A DNA stretch of 64,000 nt from Magallana gigas (Eukaryota). The notes below the pieces were generated by a model that saw nothing but the letters and a program-made list of their open reading frames with translations, was not told the DNA's origin and did not search any database. Position numbers and translations under genes: made by a program. The stretch spans positions 29,698,001 to 29,762,000 of the forward strand of contig NC_088857.1 of the NCBI RefSeq assembly GCF_963853765.1, written 5' to 3'. This document shows, one piece after another, positions 53,262 to 61,800 of the stretch (positions are counted from its first letter, which is position 1; each line of letters opens with the position of its first letter).

Positions 53262-53569
53262 TCAAAATTGACAGTGAACATGAGACCCTTCGTTGAGGGG
53301 TTTGCCCGACATATTTGTACACTTCTGCATGTAATAGTTGTAGTCATCAGATCTGCGACTTAAGTCAACGGCAAGGCCAAGGTAATGTTTGGATGTACAG
53401 GAGTGACAGGCGCCAGCTATGGAGCTCACCTGTTGATTAAAATATAGAAATTTGATCTTATGACTATCTATCAATTAATCTATCTATCTATCTATCTATC
53501 TATCGATCTATCGATCTATCTATTTATTTAATTCATTGGAAAAAGACAAATCATTACGTATATTAAAGC

Positions 53570-53618
<49 letters not shown>

Positions 53619-54405
53619 AAAGATATTTTTTTCCTTTCCAAGTTCATTAATGAAATTAAGTAACTTCTCATCCAAGCACACATCTCCTCCAGGGGCTCCC
53701 GGATAAGAACATTCACTACAAGTGTACCTGTGAATAGATGATAAGTGAATGTTGCAATTGCCTTGTTTCTGTGACATGATAACATGTTAGTCATGGTTTC
53801 AGCGTCTCTGATTCGGTCTCGGCAGACACCATTGTTAGTCTCATCTAAAAGAAAAACATTAAAAATGCAAGCGCCCCAAGTTTGTTTGTTTGTTTTTTTC
53901 AATTTACAAGTTTAATACCCCCACATTTAGTCCAAGTTACCTATCCATATTAACTTTAAGCTGACACTAATTCATGAAAGCATTTGGTCGCCTTATTAGT
54001 TTCGATCGCTCCTCTTCTGCCACTTGGGTATATTTACATTTTACAGTGCCTTTGCCTGTGATAACACTACGTATCGATTTTGCACTATATAACCCATAAT
54101 ACAAATGACGCCAAATTGAGGCGCCGGCGGGGTTTGCTTATTTAATCATACGATGACTTAAAATTATATAAATATAAGTATTGGGGAATCATTCTTTGAA
54201 TATTATGAGGTGATAATTTCGGTCGGGGCGTGATCAAATCTATCATAAAGCCCTTCGGGCTTTAATGGATTTGATAACGCCATAACCAAAATTATCACCT
54301 CATAATACTCAAAGAATGATTCCTTATTCCTTATATATATACCGGTTGAGAAAGTTACGGTCGGTTGCTTTCCGAACGAGGCATTCAGGTTGCACGGACT
54401 TCTTG
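53262..54405 (-). CDS. Peptidase M15/Hedge-domain-like (LAS fold) Zn-binding protein, copy 1; 5' part disrupted or unresolved
   Basis: Exon 53727-53619 (RYTCSECSYPGAPGGDVCLDEKLLNFINELGKEKNIF) splices in phase 0 to exon 53429-53262 (VSSIAGACHSCTSKHYLGLAVDL...NEGSHVHCQF*), giving H-x6-D and HxH motifs. Upstream candidate exons 54405-54343 and 53844 onward are phase-consistent with each other but one frame off from the core. Confidence 0.65.
53472..53613. repeat. (ATCT)n and (GA)n microsatellites in the last intron of the M15-like gene
   Basis: Direct reading (about 53472-53522 and 53573-53613). Confidence 0.9.
54185..54323. repeat. Palindromic element with central aaagccc-ttc-gggcttt hairpin
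   Basis: Arms ggaatcattctttgaatattatgaggtgataattt / aaattatcacctcataatactcaaagaatgattcc. Confidence 0.85.
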
Positions 54406-57400
54406 CTGCATGAAATACACAGTGTAGTGAAATGTTTGTGATAAAGAATAAAGGAAACTACAATTAAGAAAAACACAAAAATTATTTATTCTTTGAAAGA
54501 ATTTCCAAGGTATCCGTATTATTTTCACTCATTGTGCTGCTTTACTTCGCATGCACATCGAACACGTGTGTCGTTCATACAGAGTGCATAACGTCTGCAT
54601 CTTTTTAAAAAACCTGGCGGCACTACATCCATCACAGTAGATAAATGACAGTTAGTCCAAATAAGGAACAACATAACATTGTTTTAACAAAAAACGCTCC
54701 GTTCTAAAATCCATGCGATCAATGACATTGCTCGATCTGCCACAGTGTGTGTGGGTGTTGCGCATGTGCGATGATATGACATACACAGGAAAACGGTCTA
54801 CAATTATCGAGAGGAGTACCTGGACTTTAGTCTGTCTTGTTTCGTCGTTTATTGGATGTTCCTTGCCAGTGCAGTGGTTGTCATATTATTTTTGTTCAAA
54901 ACGCGTTTCTACAAGTCTTTTCGTCCAATATAACGTGTTCGGGTGTATGAAATATCTAAATGCTCATTATATAGGGGTGTGTAGCGATGAGCAGAACAAA
55001 AGAAATCGGCAACTAATATAGCGGTAGTCGGAGATAAAAGGGAAATAACGTGTATTCATAAATTAATGTCAGCTTTAAAATTTCATAAATCCATAGCTTT
55101 AATCGCTATGAACAATGTAGAAAAGACAATGAAAGAAAGATGACTGTAACAGAAAAAAAACTTTGCAGAGACCAGAGAAAAACGTTTGAAAAGGACATCA
55201 TAATTACATTGATCTGCAAGCAGCACGCCCGTTACAAGTATCTTCCATATTCTTATTAGCATACGCAGAATCGACCTTTTTTGAGGGATGGTCCGTCCTC
55301 AATGTAATGTTGGCGTTGTTCAGAATATCACAGGCTAACTCTTTGGATCGAGTGGAACAGACTGGGTCATCACAAAGGGAAGCGTCCGATTGGCTGATAT
55401 ACGAATCCGCAACCCAAAGATTCTGGAATATGAAGAAACTTATTTTGAAACAATATTTGTTGATGATCCAGTTCTCATTCTTTTTCGTATGTGTTTCATG
55501 TCGGTTATCGTGACGTTAGCGGTATAACTGTAACCAAAACTATTACAAAGCCCGAAAGCTTATATGATGAATCGAAGAATTGAGAGTATTAAAAGTCGAT
55601 CTTCATCTAAATGTGATTGTTCGCTTTCTTTAAAAAAAAGACAATGCAAATTTTCATTTATAAATCTAAAATAGGAGTTGTTCTTTTTAATAATGAAAAC
55701 ATTTTTTTGACTTTGGGTCTAGAATGGGTAAAAACCCTGCAGTTTATCATGAAAACAAAGAATTTGATCCATAGTTTGAAAGAAAAATAATTTCCGAGAA
55801 AAAATGTGTCATGATATTGCGTTGTTGCGTTTTACTAGGACATTTTTTTCTTGTTCTGTATGCATAAAAGTTAGATTCGTAATAAAAATGATTATGGGAA
55901 GATTCATAATTTTTTAATCATTAGATATATCATCCCAAGTTCCTAAGACTAATGGCTCTCTCTTAAATTTCTAAAACATACAACCAGCCGTGTATTGCAA
56001 GAACTAAAGTGGAGAATTATTCCCAAGATTTTTTTTTACACACAATCTCTTTTTTTTAAATGTACATTGATTAATAACTAGCTTTTATTTTATTAAATCA
56101 TTAATAGGTAGAGGACTAGATCCCCCTATCTTTCGTGTAAACCGATTATTAAGATAGATCATGTGGTACTTTACTTTCTAATATGTAAGTTGAAACGTAC
56201 TTATTGGTAACTATCGACATACTAAAGAATTATTTTTAGAAGACACATATATACACCGGTATTATAGAAAGGGAAAGATATTAGCTAGCCATACCATTAA
56301 ATGTTTGTTTTTTCCCAATCTATAAATTCTTTATGCAGTATATGCAAATAAATGTATTTCAAACAAGCTTTTTAAATACTTTTCACTACCATTAGTACTA
56401 TGATTATATTTAAAGCTGAACACAACTTGTAAAAAGCATTTTCCGCATATTTCTCTTTCATCGCCGCTATCTCTACATTCCTTTTAAATGTTCAAAGCAT
56501 TTTGCTGTTTAGGTCTCACCTGTGTGTACATTCATATTACATCTCTGTTTTACTCGGTTGCAAAGAAATTATCAAATTCATTCGAACTTTTTCTAAGCTA
56601 GGAGAATACTCAACAAATATACAGGTTAATGCATCATTATATACAAACAAAAAATGCACATAAAACAAGAAATAAATGCATGAAATCAGAGTCCAAGAAA
56701 GGAATACTACACGTCGACGACGGGTTTCAGGTGTGCAATCGGGTGGAACGATATCGAAGGGTTTATATTACATACATGTATCTATGTAACAGTGCCTATT
56801 CACGAGCGTTGCCGCAATGCCGTCTGATAAAGTAACTTAAATTTTTCATGAAATAAGCAACACACAGTCTCGTTTGATGATTTTTTCTAGTGAAAACGAT
56901 TTTAAAAAACCAACTTTTTTGTTGTGTATGGAAATGTACACAGTTATAGACTTAAATATCTAGATATTAAAATAAAAGACACAGTTCTACAGAATACATT
57001 GAACCTCATTCCAACAGCGATGTGTTAGTTGATACCAGATGTATTTGTCACTTTTGAATGGACCGTCAACAATTTTGTAGCAGGAACCCTTCCTAAGTCG
57101 CCCACCAATACCAGCAGTGGTGCTAGCTGCAAAAAAAAAAAAACAAACACGGTTTTTGTCAATAATGCAATCTCACGCAATATTGATGCTACTTGTTCAC
57201 ATAAAACATAAGCAAAAAGATTAAAAAACAATTATGACAGTAATATGTTATCGTAATCAAATAAAGTATTACCTTGCTTACGACCATTGACAGCATTGTT
57301 GACGTTCGACACGCATGCGCACATACCTTTTCTAAATTTAGCTAGTATATAAAAAATACATAAATTTTTAGATAACCAAAACACTTAATTTACAATATAA

Positions 57401-57414
57401 TTTACATTTCAATA

Positions 57415-58563
57415 TTAAAAAAACTTACATGTCCTGAAGGCAAACGAAGTGGAAGAGCAAGAAGGATCGTTACAGCCTTTGATGCCCTGAATTTGCAAGG
57501 TTCTTCCATCCTCCAACGCTAGCGCAACAAGAGTGTTACTTAACCCACGTTCAATCACACTATTCACAGCTTCATTGACATATGCATTATTGTAGGTCTT
57601 GGAAGAAATGACAATATTGACGGGAATTGAGTTAGGGTTACTAAGTTTCGAACTGGAAGATGAAAACATTATATCTGTCGGCCACCCCAAGACATAGGCT
57701 AGTCTCACGCTAATATCTTCTACGTTTTTTTCGGTAAGTTTAGTTTTTGGAGGCTCGATTTCCAGCTGAATGATTCGTTCTGTTTTCTTAGGATAGGAAC
57801 TTGAAAAACAAGTTTTAAAAACCGACCATCCAGACGAAACAGTCTTCGTAAATTCTTCCAATAAAGCATCCTTGATTGTCCAAAACACGCGCAACTGATC
57901 GCTTAGACTCAGATCACAGAAGCTAATGCCAGGTTTAGGGTTTCTATAACAATTTATATGGGACAAGAAGGCAGTTTCTTTTACACTTTGGCATGTCACA
58001 TCCGATTGGGGATACATAACATAAGCTAAACTTTCTTGCAGACACTTCCTCACGGCATCAATCCATACCTTTCCCTTATCAGAAAATCTAGCATATCTGT
58101 CGTCATAGAGCTTGCAATACTTTTCTGCATAAGTTATCGCATACCTTTCGTTGGTAGACTCACACGCTATCCTGGTTTCGAGACATTCTTTATACCACGA
58201 GCAATCAGTTCCTGCAGGGATGTAACATTTTATTGGAACCAAAGAATCACGTGGTTTTATTTCTTTTTGGGGGTCACATTGACAAAGATTTGTTCCATGG
58301 ACTCCCATACCGGAGGTCGCAGAACACTGATGCCAACAGGAGTTTGTGTTCGGGTCGCGACATGTAATTTTGTTGGTTAGACTTTTGATGGTTGATCTCT
58401 TAAGGCACACCGCGGGCTCATAGTTCGAATCTCCGAAAAACACTGATGATACACACTCTGTCTTTCCTTCTGTCCCTTTGCCGTTCTCGCATTGGCATTC
58501 CACAGTCGGAGATAGAATCAGAAGAAAAGAAATAACTTGGAACATAAAGATCAAATTCTCCAT
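57415..58563 (-). CDS. Secreted cysteine-rich protein with stanniocalcin-like domain, 382 aa, single coding exon
   Basis: Uninterrupted ORF (also open to an ATG at 58614). Signal peptide MENLIFMFQVISFLLILSPTVEC. Core DCSWYKECLE..YAEKYC..FSDKGKVWIDAVRKCLQ..CQSVKETAFLSHINCY..FCDL resembles the stanniocalcin AFxxHxxCY..FC pattern. Confidence 0.8.
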   Translation of the reverse strand: MENLIFMFQVISFLLILSPTVECQCENGKGTEGKTECVSSVFFGDSNYEPAVCLKRSTIKSLTNKITCRDPNTNSCWHQCSATSGMGVHGTNLCQCDPQKEIKPRDSLVPIKCYIPAGTDCSWYKECLETRIACESTNERYAITYAEKYCKLYDDRYARFSDKGKVWIDAVRKCLQESLAYVMYPQSDVTCQSVKETAFLSHINCYRNPKPGISFCDLSLSDQLRVFWTIKDALLEEFTKTVSSGWSVFKTCFSSSYPKKTERIIQLEIEPPKTKLTEKNVEDISVRLAYVLGWPTDIMFSSSSSKLSNPNSIPVNIVISSKTYNNAYVNEAVNSVIERGLSNTLVALALEDGRTLQIQGIKGCNDPSCSSTSFAFRTCKFF

Positions 58564-59429
58564 TTTTACGAAACTTCCTGGTTGTAAGCTAAGTGTCATC
58601 AGGATTTTAAACATCCGTTTAAAGGTTTTACTTGCACAATCGATTTAAAGAGCCACAGATTGAAATCATCGATTTCCTAAAATCATAATTAAGTAGCTAC
58701 GCCTTTAAAACAGTTTAACTGTTATTCTTTTAAACGAAATATATTGAATCGTACTGTATTGCATGTGTTTTTTAAAATTTGCTTGATTCACAATGCCTTA
58801 TTGTATATTTCGTTTTCCCACTAACATCTTTCCGGAAAATGGCTATTTAGCAGTCCCTCTACCGGAAAAATGACTATGTAGTTAATTTTTCCTCCACGGA
58901 AAGTCTATTTCCCAAATTTTACAACCAAGTTACCCCACGGAAAGCCTACTATATACCGGTAGTAAATCCCCCCCCCCCTTTCTTCCATTCCGGTCAGGTT
59001 TATGGCGGATCGTTTGTGACAATATTTTGCAATTTCTGAAATGACATTGATTACTCAAATGAAGGGTAATTAACGCTTACTAGCTCCTCTCAAAAACTAC
59101 TTTGTTAATCTTACGTAATTAATGATTACGTAATTAAAGGAATTTAAAATATGTTTTCAAACATTTGCATACTTAGAAATAACATCTAGCGTATTAATAT
59201 TATTATTATAATTTATAAAGCGCACAATTTTAAAAATAAAAATGCAATCATTGGCGCCGTAAGTACAAAAAAGAACCCCATATATCTGTTATACATGCAG
59301 AATACATGCAGAATTTTAAAAATGTTGTGTAAGAAGAGTTCACAGGTTTTATTTTTTGTTTTGTTTGTTTGTTTTTAAATGCACATAATTATTTAAAAGC
59401 ACACCTATAATAATTTTTTTTTAGCTGGC

Positions 59430-61330
59430 GCTTAAAAGTAGTCTGTCGGCAATTCATTCCAAACGGTAGGTCCTGATATTGCGAATGACATGACAGCAAA
59501 GGTTTTGCGTAAGAGCTTATGTAGAGCTATCACTCGACAAGCACAAGTTTTACAGAACAATTTTGCAATAACTGCAACCTTTGGATGGTACATTCCGGCA
59601 ATCCGTACAAGACACTGTTGGCATAGTCCAGATGGCTAGTAACTAAGGACTGTAATATTTGCTTACACGAGTCTTCAGTAAGGTATTGGCAAATATGGTT
59701 GATTTAGACCAATTTCAAGGATATTGTTTTTCATTTTTCGCTAATTTTCTTAAAGTTAAATGTTCATCTAGATAACAACCGAGATATTTAATACACATAG
59801 ATGAATTTGCACGAGCACCCACAACATTTATGGAAGTGGAAGAGGACAAAGATATCATCTGCTGCCTTCCAAATAACAAAAATTCAGTTTAACTTGAGTT
59901 AAGTTTCAATCTGTTTACTAGATTTATCCAGTCAATGATATTAACTAAGACGTTTTCTAAATTTGTTATTACACGTTTTTCATCTACAAATGCCTTTGGA
60001 TTGAAACTTTCATATGCGGAGTGGTCATCGGCATAACCTAATAAGAAGACCCCCGAGTCTTTGAGGAACTGTTGTAGAGTGCTTGCGTATACAGTGTAGA
60101 GCGCAGGTCCACATATACTGCCTTGTGATACTGAAAATTCCAGTCATCTAGGCTGAGATTTAGACGCATTAATAGACACTTCCCCCCTCAATGAGGAAAG
60201 GTACGATTGAAACCAATCAAGTGCTGACTCAGTATGGAGTTCTCAACCGTATCTAATGCAGCGGAAAGATCTCATGCGACTAAGGCGGTGACTTCCTGCT
60301 TCTCCAATTCCCACAGAATGTCTGATGATAGTTTTAGAAGAGCTGTTCCGGTACTGAACCACTCTTATATGCACTTTGATAATCAGGTAGCAGCTTATTC
60401 GATTCGAGATATTTAATAAACTGGTTTAAAGCACACTTTTCGACAATTTTTGAGAGGTAACTTAAATTACTCACCGACCGATAATTTTCAAAACTACACC
60501 CAAACTGTTCCTTTTCAATGGGGGTTTAATAATTGCTGTTTTCCATTCATTTGCAAAATCACCCGGTGTTAGGGGTTTTAATAACTATGTATGTAATTAT
60601 TGGCAATAACACCTCGGAAAATTGCTTGATCAGTTTTGATGGGACTGGGTCAGTTGGGTAGGTAGTGGACTTTGAGTTGTTGATCACACCTTACACATCT
60701 TCGTCTGATCCTGAATCAAAATGTTTAAAGTCATTGTGCACTTAGATCCAAGATTTGGGTCAAAATTTTTAAAATTATCTAAAGTTTTGCGAATAGCAAG
60801 AATTTTATCCACAAAGAATGAACCAAATTCGCCTGCTAGTGATTCGTCGCTAATGTTTGGCGGCATTGGATTACTATTAGTTCTACCTATCAATCCAAAC
60901 TCAAGTTTATACATTGTGGATGCATCTTTTCCAAACTCGGTAATATATGTTCCGAGTTGATATGCTTGGCATGTATTTGTTGTATCTGAGATGTTTTCTA
61001 TAGGCCCGTTTGGCACATCGAAAGACCATCATTGTCTGCAGTCTTGTTCCCTTCCTCCTATCTTCTTTCCGCTGACCAACAGCGCATCTTTAGATGACAT
61101 GATTCATCTGTAAACCATGGTAACGTCGGTCGGATCGTAACTAATTTCTCTTTTTCTCTTTTTCAGGAACACGTTCGTCCAAGATATTTCGGAGTTCAGA
61201 ATTGTAAAACTTTGCTTAATCTTCCAACTTTTCATGTTTGGTTGCAATTTCATAGATCGTTCATAAACTGTGTCGAATTTAAAGCACTGAGTTTCCGAAC
61301 TTTCCTCGATTTCCTAATTATCTTAGGCTT
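59430..61330 (-). mobile_element. Decayed L2/CR1-group LINE (RT with many stops and frameshifts)
   Basis: Minus-strand remnants GPALYTVYAS, LGYADDHS (60024-60038), KYLGCYLDEHL, SHLDYANSVLYG and GPTVWNELP. Confidence 0.85.
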
Positions 61331-61443: not shown

Positions 61444-61607
61444 AAAGAAATAAAGCATTCATATTTCTAAAGTATGAAATGTCTACAATTCTTACACAGA
61501 GAGGAAAAACACACTTTGCATTTCAGATCTAAAGATATCCTCATGGTACAAAAGAAAAAGAAGTAGTAATTCATGTTTATCACAAAATGCGTTTAGTGAC
61601 TTTTTAC

Positions 61608-61775
61608 TCAAAATTGACAGTGAACATGAGTCCCTTCGTTGAGGGGTTTGCCCGACAAATTTGTACACTTCTGCATGTAATAGTTGTAGTCATCAGATCT
61701 GCGACTTAAGTCAACGGCAAGGCCAAGGTAATGTCTGGATTTACAGGAGTGACAGGCGCCAGCTATGGAGCTCAC
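61608..61775 (-). CDS. Terminal exon of a second M15/Hedge-like gene copy (upstream exons not found in window)
   Basis: VSSIAGACHSCKSRHYLGLAVDLSRRSDDYNYYMQKCTNLSGKPLNEGTHVHCQF*. It differs from 53429-53262 at four nucleotides. Acceptor context and about 150 bp of 3' UTR are also duplicated. Confidence 0.7.
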   Translation of the reverse strand: MSSIAGACHSCKSRHYLGLAVDLSRRSDDYNYYMQKCTNLSGKPLNEGTHVHCQF

Positions 61776-61800
61776 CTGTTGATTAAAATATAGAAATTTG

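Follow-up and report, generated by a model that had tools for sequence, protein, structure and literature searches.

A six-exon gene of Magallana gigas encodes a candidate secreted peptidoglycan hydrolase with a predicted LAS zinc peptidase domain

Analysis of a 64,000-nt stretch of the Magallana gigas genome (contig NC_088857.1, positions 29,698,001 to 29,762,000; hereafter the window, within which all gene coordinates are given) revealed a six-exon gene on the minus strand, 58563..53262, that is spliced and expressed and encodes a 605-amino-acid (aa) oyster protein predicted to be secreted. A sequence-only reading had placed in 53262-54405 a small, stand-alone zinc domain of the kind shared by Hedgehog proteins and M15 peptidases, encoded by two spliced exons. 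These proved to be exons 5 and 6 of the longer gene, and the domain to be the C-terminal 150 aa of a multi-domain protein, so that the terms stand-alone and small no longer apply and the 92-aa peptide gives way to a 605-aa product. The proposed extent also changed, since 53728..54405 is intron 4 sequence, not coding, and the conserved domain starts upstream at about 55383. Every intron is GT..AG, and the frame is open over all 605 codons. The gene is made up as follows:

57429..58563, minus strand: exon 1, starting with the ATG at 58563 and open to the donor ACAT/gtaagt; covered by RNA contigs X3 and X1, with junction 57429/57341; encodes the predicted signal peptide MENLIFMFQVISFLLILSPTVEC and then a Cys-rich, animal-specific region of ~380 aa
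57273..57341, minus strand: exon 2 (69 nt), mapped by transcript contig L001; GT..AG junctions 57429/57341 and 57273/57126 in RNA contigs
57005..57126, minus strand: exon 3 (122 nt), in which the SH3b-like segment begins; mapped by L001, with RNA junction 57005/55422
55208..55422, minus strand: exon 4 (215 nt), which completes the SH3b-like segment and, from ~55383, encodes the first ~58 aa of the peptidase-family domain; donor ATCAAT/gtaatt
53619..53727, minus strand: exon 5, previously taken as the first exon; acceptor cacag/G and donor TTT/gtaagc; encodes Y515, the APGG motif (526-528) and the helix LLNFINELGK
53430..53618, minus strand: intron 5 (189 nt), almost entirely (CT)n and (GATA)n microsatellites; passed over as repetitive in the read alignment, and removed in L001 and in X3 record 9
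53262..53429, minus strand: exon 6, acceptor aacag, coding to 53265 with the TGA at 53264-53262; encodes H559, S563, H565, D572, E597, H600 and H602
52645..53261, minus strand: 3' untranslated region (UTR), with AATAAA just ahead of the transcript-contig end; seen as L001 positions 715-1492 (53429-52645) and in stranded RNA depth

Reads of four RNA runs were aligned to window positions 52700-58650, and all five GT..AG junctions were present in the RNA contigs. The junction that joins exon 4 in frame to exon 5 (55208/53727) was found in two contigs and in 5 + 6 raw polyA reads of two runs, with 4 + 6 distinct starts; exon 4 ends in ...AGA TCA AT/gtaatt, and the first G of exon 5 completes the in-frame ATG codon of M514. 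Record 9 of contig X3 (52700-53429, 53622-53724 and 55205-55424) carries exons 6, 5 and 4 in a single piece, and first mates within exons mapped to the plus strand only, indicating a minus-strand mRNA. The proposed joining of 53619 to 53429 was seen both in this record and in L001, a 1,492-nt public transcript contig (Logan, SRR14803181) that maps also to four more blocks upstream in the window. L001 encodes P0001 (92 aa), which matches the final 92 aa of the 605-aa model exactly and was the sole protein returned by a search with the last exon.

Spliced, exons 5 and 6 read ...YTCSECSYPGAPGGDVCLDEKLLNFINELGKEKNIF joined to VSSIAGACHSCTSKHYLGLAVDL...NEGSHVHCQF, or more fully ...YTCSECSYPGAPGGDVCLDEKLLNFINELGKEKNIF joined to VSSIAGACHSCTSKHYLGLAVDLSRRSDDYNYYMQKCTNMSGKPLNEGSHVHCQF and the stop codon, supplying the H-x6-D (H565..D572) and HxH (H600, H602) motifs that had been recognized from the letters. 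The stop codon lies three residues past HxH and is followed by the 3' UTR, leaving no Hint/intein domain, also as anticipated. The same architecture is present in one open reading frame (ORF) of P0004, a 604-aa protein from another oyster transcriptome that is 73% identical over its full length, and, as far as exon 5, in P0006 (Saccostrea echinata LOC133191631). Bacterial contamination was rejected on the basis of the 57-Mb contig, the RNA-confirmed spliceosomal introns and a GC content of ~33% that matches the surroundings; the gene is an intron-containing animal gene, as first supposed. An extra exon near 54405-54363 was rejected as well, because it holds an in-frame stop, lies inside a repeat and is bypassed by the 53727/55208 junction.

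The protein is organized as a signal peptide, a Cys-rich region (residues ~24-380), an SH3b-like segment (~385-455) and a C-terminal zinc peptidase-type domain (456-605). Residues 1-23 look like a signal peptide. The Cys-rich region matched no Pfam family; it has homologues in oysters and other molluscs and also, without the peptidase domain, in a coral. Residues ~385-455 (...GGRLRKGSCYKIVDGPFKSDKYIWYQLTHRCWNENLWVADSYI) form a probable bacterial-type, cell-wall-binding SH3 domain. SH3_3 (PF08239) was the top Pfam match in four of five homologous mollusc segments, at 13-19 bits (E 0.0014-0.1) against a gathering threshold of 27 bits, and the language-model neighbours of the segment were SH3_3/SH3_5 clusters (score 0.90, with low shared-feature counts). 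A single-sequence AlphaFold2 (AF2) model of P0004 residues 395-604 was unusable, with a predicted local distance difference test (pLDDT) value of 36.

The C-terminal domain belongs to a family that is large and has no curated model. When 1.84 billion representatives were searched exhaustively with phmmer and P0004:455-604 as the query, 430 proteins were returned at E<=1e-3 (115 at <=1e-10); these cluster representatives span many bacterial phyla as well as gastropods and bivalves, and the best 150 of the 430 were inspected. A family alignment of 55 sequences (A1) yielded the signature LA..IL, H.SG..D.A.A..NI.D...G..A.RS.Y and APGG, then AGGxHSxxSxHYxGxAxD and HxHC, with D493, N500, D503, G507 and R512-S513 as the conserved positions in the part encoded by exon 4. 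The GAPGG and IAGAxHS segments, whose resemblance to bacterial proteins had been remarked on earlier, are indeed shared with them and are conserved family-wide. Exon-wise searches of Pfam, NCBIfam and PHROGs and single-sequence searches of the PDB gave nothing significant. The A1 profile, compared with all PDB sequences, matched the N-domains of Shh, Ihh and Dhh at E 8e-5 to 9e-3 over GxHSxxSxHYxGxAxD...HxHC, pairing G-c-H-S-a-n-S-k-H-Y-k-G-l-A-v-D...h-v-h-C with Shh GHHSEESLHYEGRAVD...HIHC, in a match limited to a 57-residue core of ~20% identity; LdcB, DacB and ChiX appeared at E about 1-2 only.

Structure prediction pointed in the same direction. With A1 as input, AF2 gave a pLDDT of 95.1 and a predicted template modelling score (pTM) of 0.89. 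The top 30 Foldseek matches in the PDB were Hedgehog (Hh) N-domains followed by 1lbu, at probability 0.8-1.0, E 0.02-0.2 and a template modelling score (TM) of ~0.4 over 80-90 columns. VIA, a structure search independent of Foldseek, ranked ShhN (Z 7.8, 103 residues aligned), Drosophila Hh (7.0) and the Streptomyces albus Zn DD-peptidase 1lbu (7.0, 96 residues aligned) ahead of VldE (6.3), VanX (5.3), Ply500 (5.2), MepA (5.1) and LysB4 (5.0). Cluster neighbours in AFDB, at TM 0.8-0.94, are unnamed or are called 'Carboxypeptidase' or 'Peptidase M15A C-terminal domain-containing protein'. Because the VIA top list consists almost exclusively of LAS enzymes and agrees with the sequence profile, we assign the domain, despite middling Z values, a predicted LAS fold on the Hedgehog/M15A side with a family-specific N-terminal extension of ~75 residues. 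The LAS (Hedgehog/M15) zinc domain of the sequence-only reading is thereby upheld.

Judged by the alignment to Shh, the domain would bind zinc through H565, D572 and H602; H559 and H600 would act in catalysis, and E597 lies close by. H559 and H600 correspond to Shh H135 and H181, and H565, D572, H600 and H602 align with Shh H141, D148, H181 and H183. Counted over 136 near-full-length family members, H565 is invariant (136/136), H559 and D572 are each present in 135, H602 in 133 and H600 in 120. The window protein keeps all six residues (H559, H565, D572, E597, H600 and H602), as does P0004. E597 is kept only within the mollusc subclade of the window protein (14 of 29 Cys-rich members), and most bacterial members have His at this position.

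By the Cys content of the domain the family splits cleanly in two, a Cys-poor group (0-4) and a Cys-rich group (6-12). The named Cys-poor members are bacterial (Actinoplanes, Deinobacterium, Chloroflexota), some under the IMG name 'zinc D-Ala-D-Ala carboxypeptidase'. A genome scan for the motif [VI]SEIAGG[SC]H, based on a 17-sequence bacterial alignment, found 35 loci in hosts that include Saccharibacteria, Doudnabacteria, six Herpetosiphon genomes and other Chloroflexota, as well as Streptomyces, Pseudonocardia, Frankiaceae, Paractinoplanes, Verrucomicrobiota, Bacteroidota, Dormiibacterota, Binatia and a metagenome-assembled Alcaligenaceae genome. Bacterial members occur in at least eight phyla, Actinomycetota and Deinococcota also among them. 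A Pfam census of partner domains over 105 Cys-poor, bacterial-type members recovered PG_binding_1 in 16, PG_binding_3 in nine, T4SS_pilin in seven, YkuD_2 and PAAR in three each, SLT, eCIS_core and Rv2525c-like in two each, and Amidase_2, Amidase_3, VanY and GH46 in one each. Fusion to PAAR, eCIS and pilin domains suggests that the family is used against other cells. T4SS-pilin-like N-terminal fusions account for seven of the 105 members, and loci of this type were found in candidate-phyla-radiation genomes (Saccharibacteria, Doudnabacteria). Herpetosiphon are predatory bacteria, and their carriage of the family, together with the T4SS-pilin and PAAR fusions, hints at an offensive role against the walls of other cells.

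All 13 Cys-rich members with names are molluscan, from Patella (two species), Lottia, Biomphalaria (two species), Candidula, Batillaria, Littorina, Mercenaria and Saccostrea. Their architectures combine the peptidase domain with one to three defensin-like Cys-rich repeats, with an SH3b-like domain or with the oyster N-terminal region; VWA domains accompany it in unnamed metagenomic proteins. In a quick tree of 136 sequences the Cys-rich group formed one side of a branch with a Shimodaira-Hasegawa-like approximate likelihood ratio test (SH-aLRT) value of 74-78, and in a careful tree of 75 sequences it did so with an ultrafast bootstrap (UFboot) of 94 and an SH-aLRT of 88, 94% of bootstrap trees agreeing. 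The tree is unrooted, and it draws on the best 150 of the 430 matches. Because the bacterial range is broad, the molluscs form a single clan, the introns are conserved and the composition is that of the host, we infer that one old transfer from a bacterium into an ancestral mollusc, followed by diversification into several architectures, is the most likely history. The ancient horizontal transfer raised in the sequence-only reading is made plausible by the bacterial range and the Cys-rich clan.

Further paralogues lie on the same chromosome at 12.170-12.174 Mb (L012), 29.784 Mb (L010) and 29.844 Mb (L011). They are 38-60% identical, and within the 10 kb examined none has the long N-terminal region; at least L012 has its two introns at the same positions, and it also carries the SH3b-like exon. 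Beside the peptidase domain many mollusc paralogues have a six-Cys module of ~40 aa (C..GG.CQ....C.G.Y...LC.G...R.CC) in one to three copies, found in P0021 and P0171 (Patella), P0034 (Littorina), P0079, P0024 and the C-terminus of P0056, under NCBI names such as 'lysozyme 3' and 'lysozyme 1-like'. The module, including the repeats of Patella 'lysozyme 3', had no sequence match in Pfam or the PDB, the best being a non-significant beta-defensin hit (E 0.45), and the domain searches do not explain the 'lysozyme' name of the Patella relative.

We propose that the gene probably encodes a secreted mollusc peptidoglycan hydrolase whose LAS zinc peptidase domain would be of bacterial origin, a proposal in which zinc binding, substrate, role and direction of transfer are inferred. 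Peptidoglycan is the favoured substrate because of the partner domains of the bacterial members. In the proposed mechanism the protein would be secreted, and the SH3b-like segment, possibly with the N-terminal region, would position the enzyme; the LAS domain, with zinc bound by His, Asp and His and a His (or Glu) as general base, would then cut a peptide bond in a peptidoglycan stem or cross-link. Such extracellular action could serve defence or the handling of ingested or commensal bacteria.

Several findings weigh against this proposal. The C-terminal domain rises above threshold in none of Pfam, NCBIfam and PHROGs. Peptidase_M15_4 (PF13539) and VanY (PF02557) score 13.5-15.2 bits on the window exons, below the gathering threshold of 25, and only four of the 105 bacterial members reach E<1e-3 with these models, the best at 24.3 bits and again under the cut-off. 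Peptidase_M15_3 (PF08291, threshold 23.2 bits) does not match the mollusc domain and gives sub-threshold scores of 14-22 bits on bacterial relatives, and HH_signal (PF01085) has no match to the mollusc domain at E<=10. VIA itself rates Z values of 7-8 as middling, and only ~100 of 150 residues align. With an unrooted tree, the direction of transfer is argued from taxon distribution alone. Several eukaryotic paralogues (P0044, P0062, P0032 and P0147) lack one or both HxH histidines, so not every member would be an enzyme, and our search found no enzyme assay for any family member. The N-terminal region of ~380 aa is animal-specific, which leaves room for an endogenous substrate. In L001 (contig positions about 540-606) two pieces of exon 4, of 10 nt and 80 nt, are missing, which brings in-frame stops before the peptidase domain; the 80-nt gap has no GT..AG, and the four runs examined show no such form. 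The deletion form could be an allele, a paralogue, a sister-species sequence or an assembly artefact.

One alternative is that the N-terminal region targets the host matrix and that the domain has an endogenous extracellular substrate (a matrix proteoglycan, mucus or a shell-matrix protein) or serves as a Hedgehog-like binding module. Hedgehog N-domains are the nearest solved relatives by both profile and fold, published work has proposed a matrix-directed function for the zinc site of Shh (PMC6027127, PMC8052667), and other animals, including the coral, have the N-terminal 380 aa apart from the peptidase domain. The resemblance to Shh is nevertheless confined to the core described above, at ~20% identity and with neither HH_signal nor Hint; the closer homologues are bacterial proteins whose partner domains bind peptidoglycan or lyse cell walls, and other mollusc paralogues pair the domain with SH3b-like and defensin-like Cys-rich modules. 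We regard this alternative as unlikely.

A variant, decidedly unlikely in our judgement, would make the gene an independently acquired mollusc branch of the Hedgehog/DD-peptidase superfamily, its catalytic residues intact, welded in oysters to an animal-specific extracellular region and acting on host matrix also or instead. By sequence profile the mollusc branch is nearer to the Hedge domain than to any solved bacterial M15 enzyme. Action on host matrix, if true, would add a second, natural example of a bacterial wall peptidase taken by an animal into its extracellular biology, and would offer a tractable enzyme with which to probe the disputed Hedgehog zinc site.

It is quite improbable that the protein is a non-catalytic pattern-recognition molecule that binds peptidoglycan through its SH3b-like and LAS-like domains and leaves it uncut. 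The four paralogues that lost HxH histidines show that the scaffold can be retained when the catalytic set is incomplete, but the window protein and P0004 have retained every one of the six residues. Finally, a decaying or non-functional copy, or a separate short transcript of the LAS exons starting at M514, is suggested by the stops in L001 upstream of its ATG-initiated 92-aa ORF and by a lone last-exon copy at 61611-61784, yet is very improbable given the fully open 605-codon frame, the raw reads and contigs from four runs that join exon 4 to exon 5 in frame, and the fact that a 92-aa product would lack the signal peptide and the first ~58 conserved residues (D493, N500, D503, R512-S513).

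The candidate hydrolase shares with the zinc D-Ala-D-Ala carboxypeptidase of Streptomyces albus G (1LBU; MEROPS M15A; Peptidase_M15_3) the predicted LAS fold and the H-x6-D and HxH zinc motif, and in 1LBU, as in the bacterial members with PG_binding_1, the catalytic domain lies C-terminal to a cell-wall-binding domain. Unlike 1LBU, which was not a significant match in the profile search, the family has AGGxHS where an SGYR segment is usual and its own N-terminal extension, in which D, N, D, G, RS-Y and APGG positions are invariant. The Hedgehog N-domain (ShhN/IhhN) is the best solved match, its core motif aligning residue for residue. In contrast to Hedgehog, the oyster protein has its domain at the C-terminus, lacks Hint/Hog and the signals for cholesterol or palmitate processing, and by inspection has a short IAGA loop in place of the Shh calcium-site loop WDEDG. 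Membership of the true Hedgehog genes was rejected, in line with the sequence-only reading, given the missing HH_signal and Hint matches and the alignment of the 57-residue core only. Bacterial 'bacHh' proteins are reported to be >50% identical to ShhN (Roelink 2018, PMC6027127). The present family has the same core motif, at only ~20% identity to Shh.

Rusticalin, whose hosts are ascidians, placozoans and coral, carries a domain that resembles the phage A500 L-Ala-D-Glu peptidase and is detectable by Pfam as M15, PF13539 being reported for proteins of this kind (PMC6339383, PMC7379824). Like the oyster protein, rusticalin is a secreted animal protein in which Cys-rich modules precede a LAS-type peptidase domain apparently derived from bacteria or phages, and in both introns would have been gained after transfer; the present family differs in belonging to another LAS branch, in being invisible to Pfam and in having only molluscs as named eukaryotic members. 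Domesticated amidase effectors (dae) are NlpC/P60-type amidases, not LAS zinc peptidases. Chou et al. are said to have described in 2015 how dae genes of ticks and other eukaryotes took over an interbacterial wall-degrading toxin for immunity. The three PAAR fusions among bacterial members of the present family have the architecture of type VI secretion system toxins and offer a parallel.

The literature searched contained no account of the present mollusc family. Because none of Pfam, NCBIfam and PHROGs detects it, the mollusc proteins that belong to it bear the annotation 'uncharacterized' or the misleading one 'lysozyme'. Identification as LAS zinc peptidases would make them a new candidate class of antibacterial effectors in oysters and snails, and a probable further case of bacterium-to-animal transfer of a cell-wall enzyme beside the dae genes, rusticalin and the bivalve phage-type lysozymes. 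They also provide Hedgehog-like sequences, catalytically intact as judged by their residues, that can be expressed and assayed.

The surroundings of the gene contain repeats and partial copies. Intron 4 holds an inverted repeat (53894-54490) resembling a miniature inverted-repeat transposable element, with 77-nt arms at 54167-54243 and 54265-54341, over which RNA depth was very high on both strands with many loose read ends. Evidently the element is present in many copies and transcribed elsewhere; its position explains the upper part of the coordinates first given for the domain. Upstream of the gene, at ~59,500-61,300 on the minus strand and between it and a duplicated exon, stop-ridden translations with ...GYADDH... 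look like a degenerate reverse-transcriptase remnant of the long interspersed nuclear element type; a Pfam scan of its sole long ORF (60687-61016) gave no match. The duplicated exon is a second, isolated copy of the last exon with ~170 nt of 3' UTR at 61444-61784, minus strand (exon 61611-61784). Neither exon 5 nor earlier exons were found within 10 kb upstream of it. The copy has 90% protein identity, an intact frame (VSSIAGACHSCKSRHYLGLAVDL...EGTHVHCQF and stop) and the same GATA microsatellite upstream, and is probably a partial segmental duplicate.

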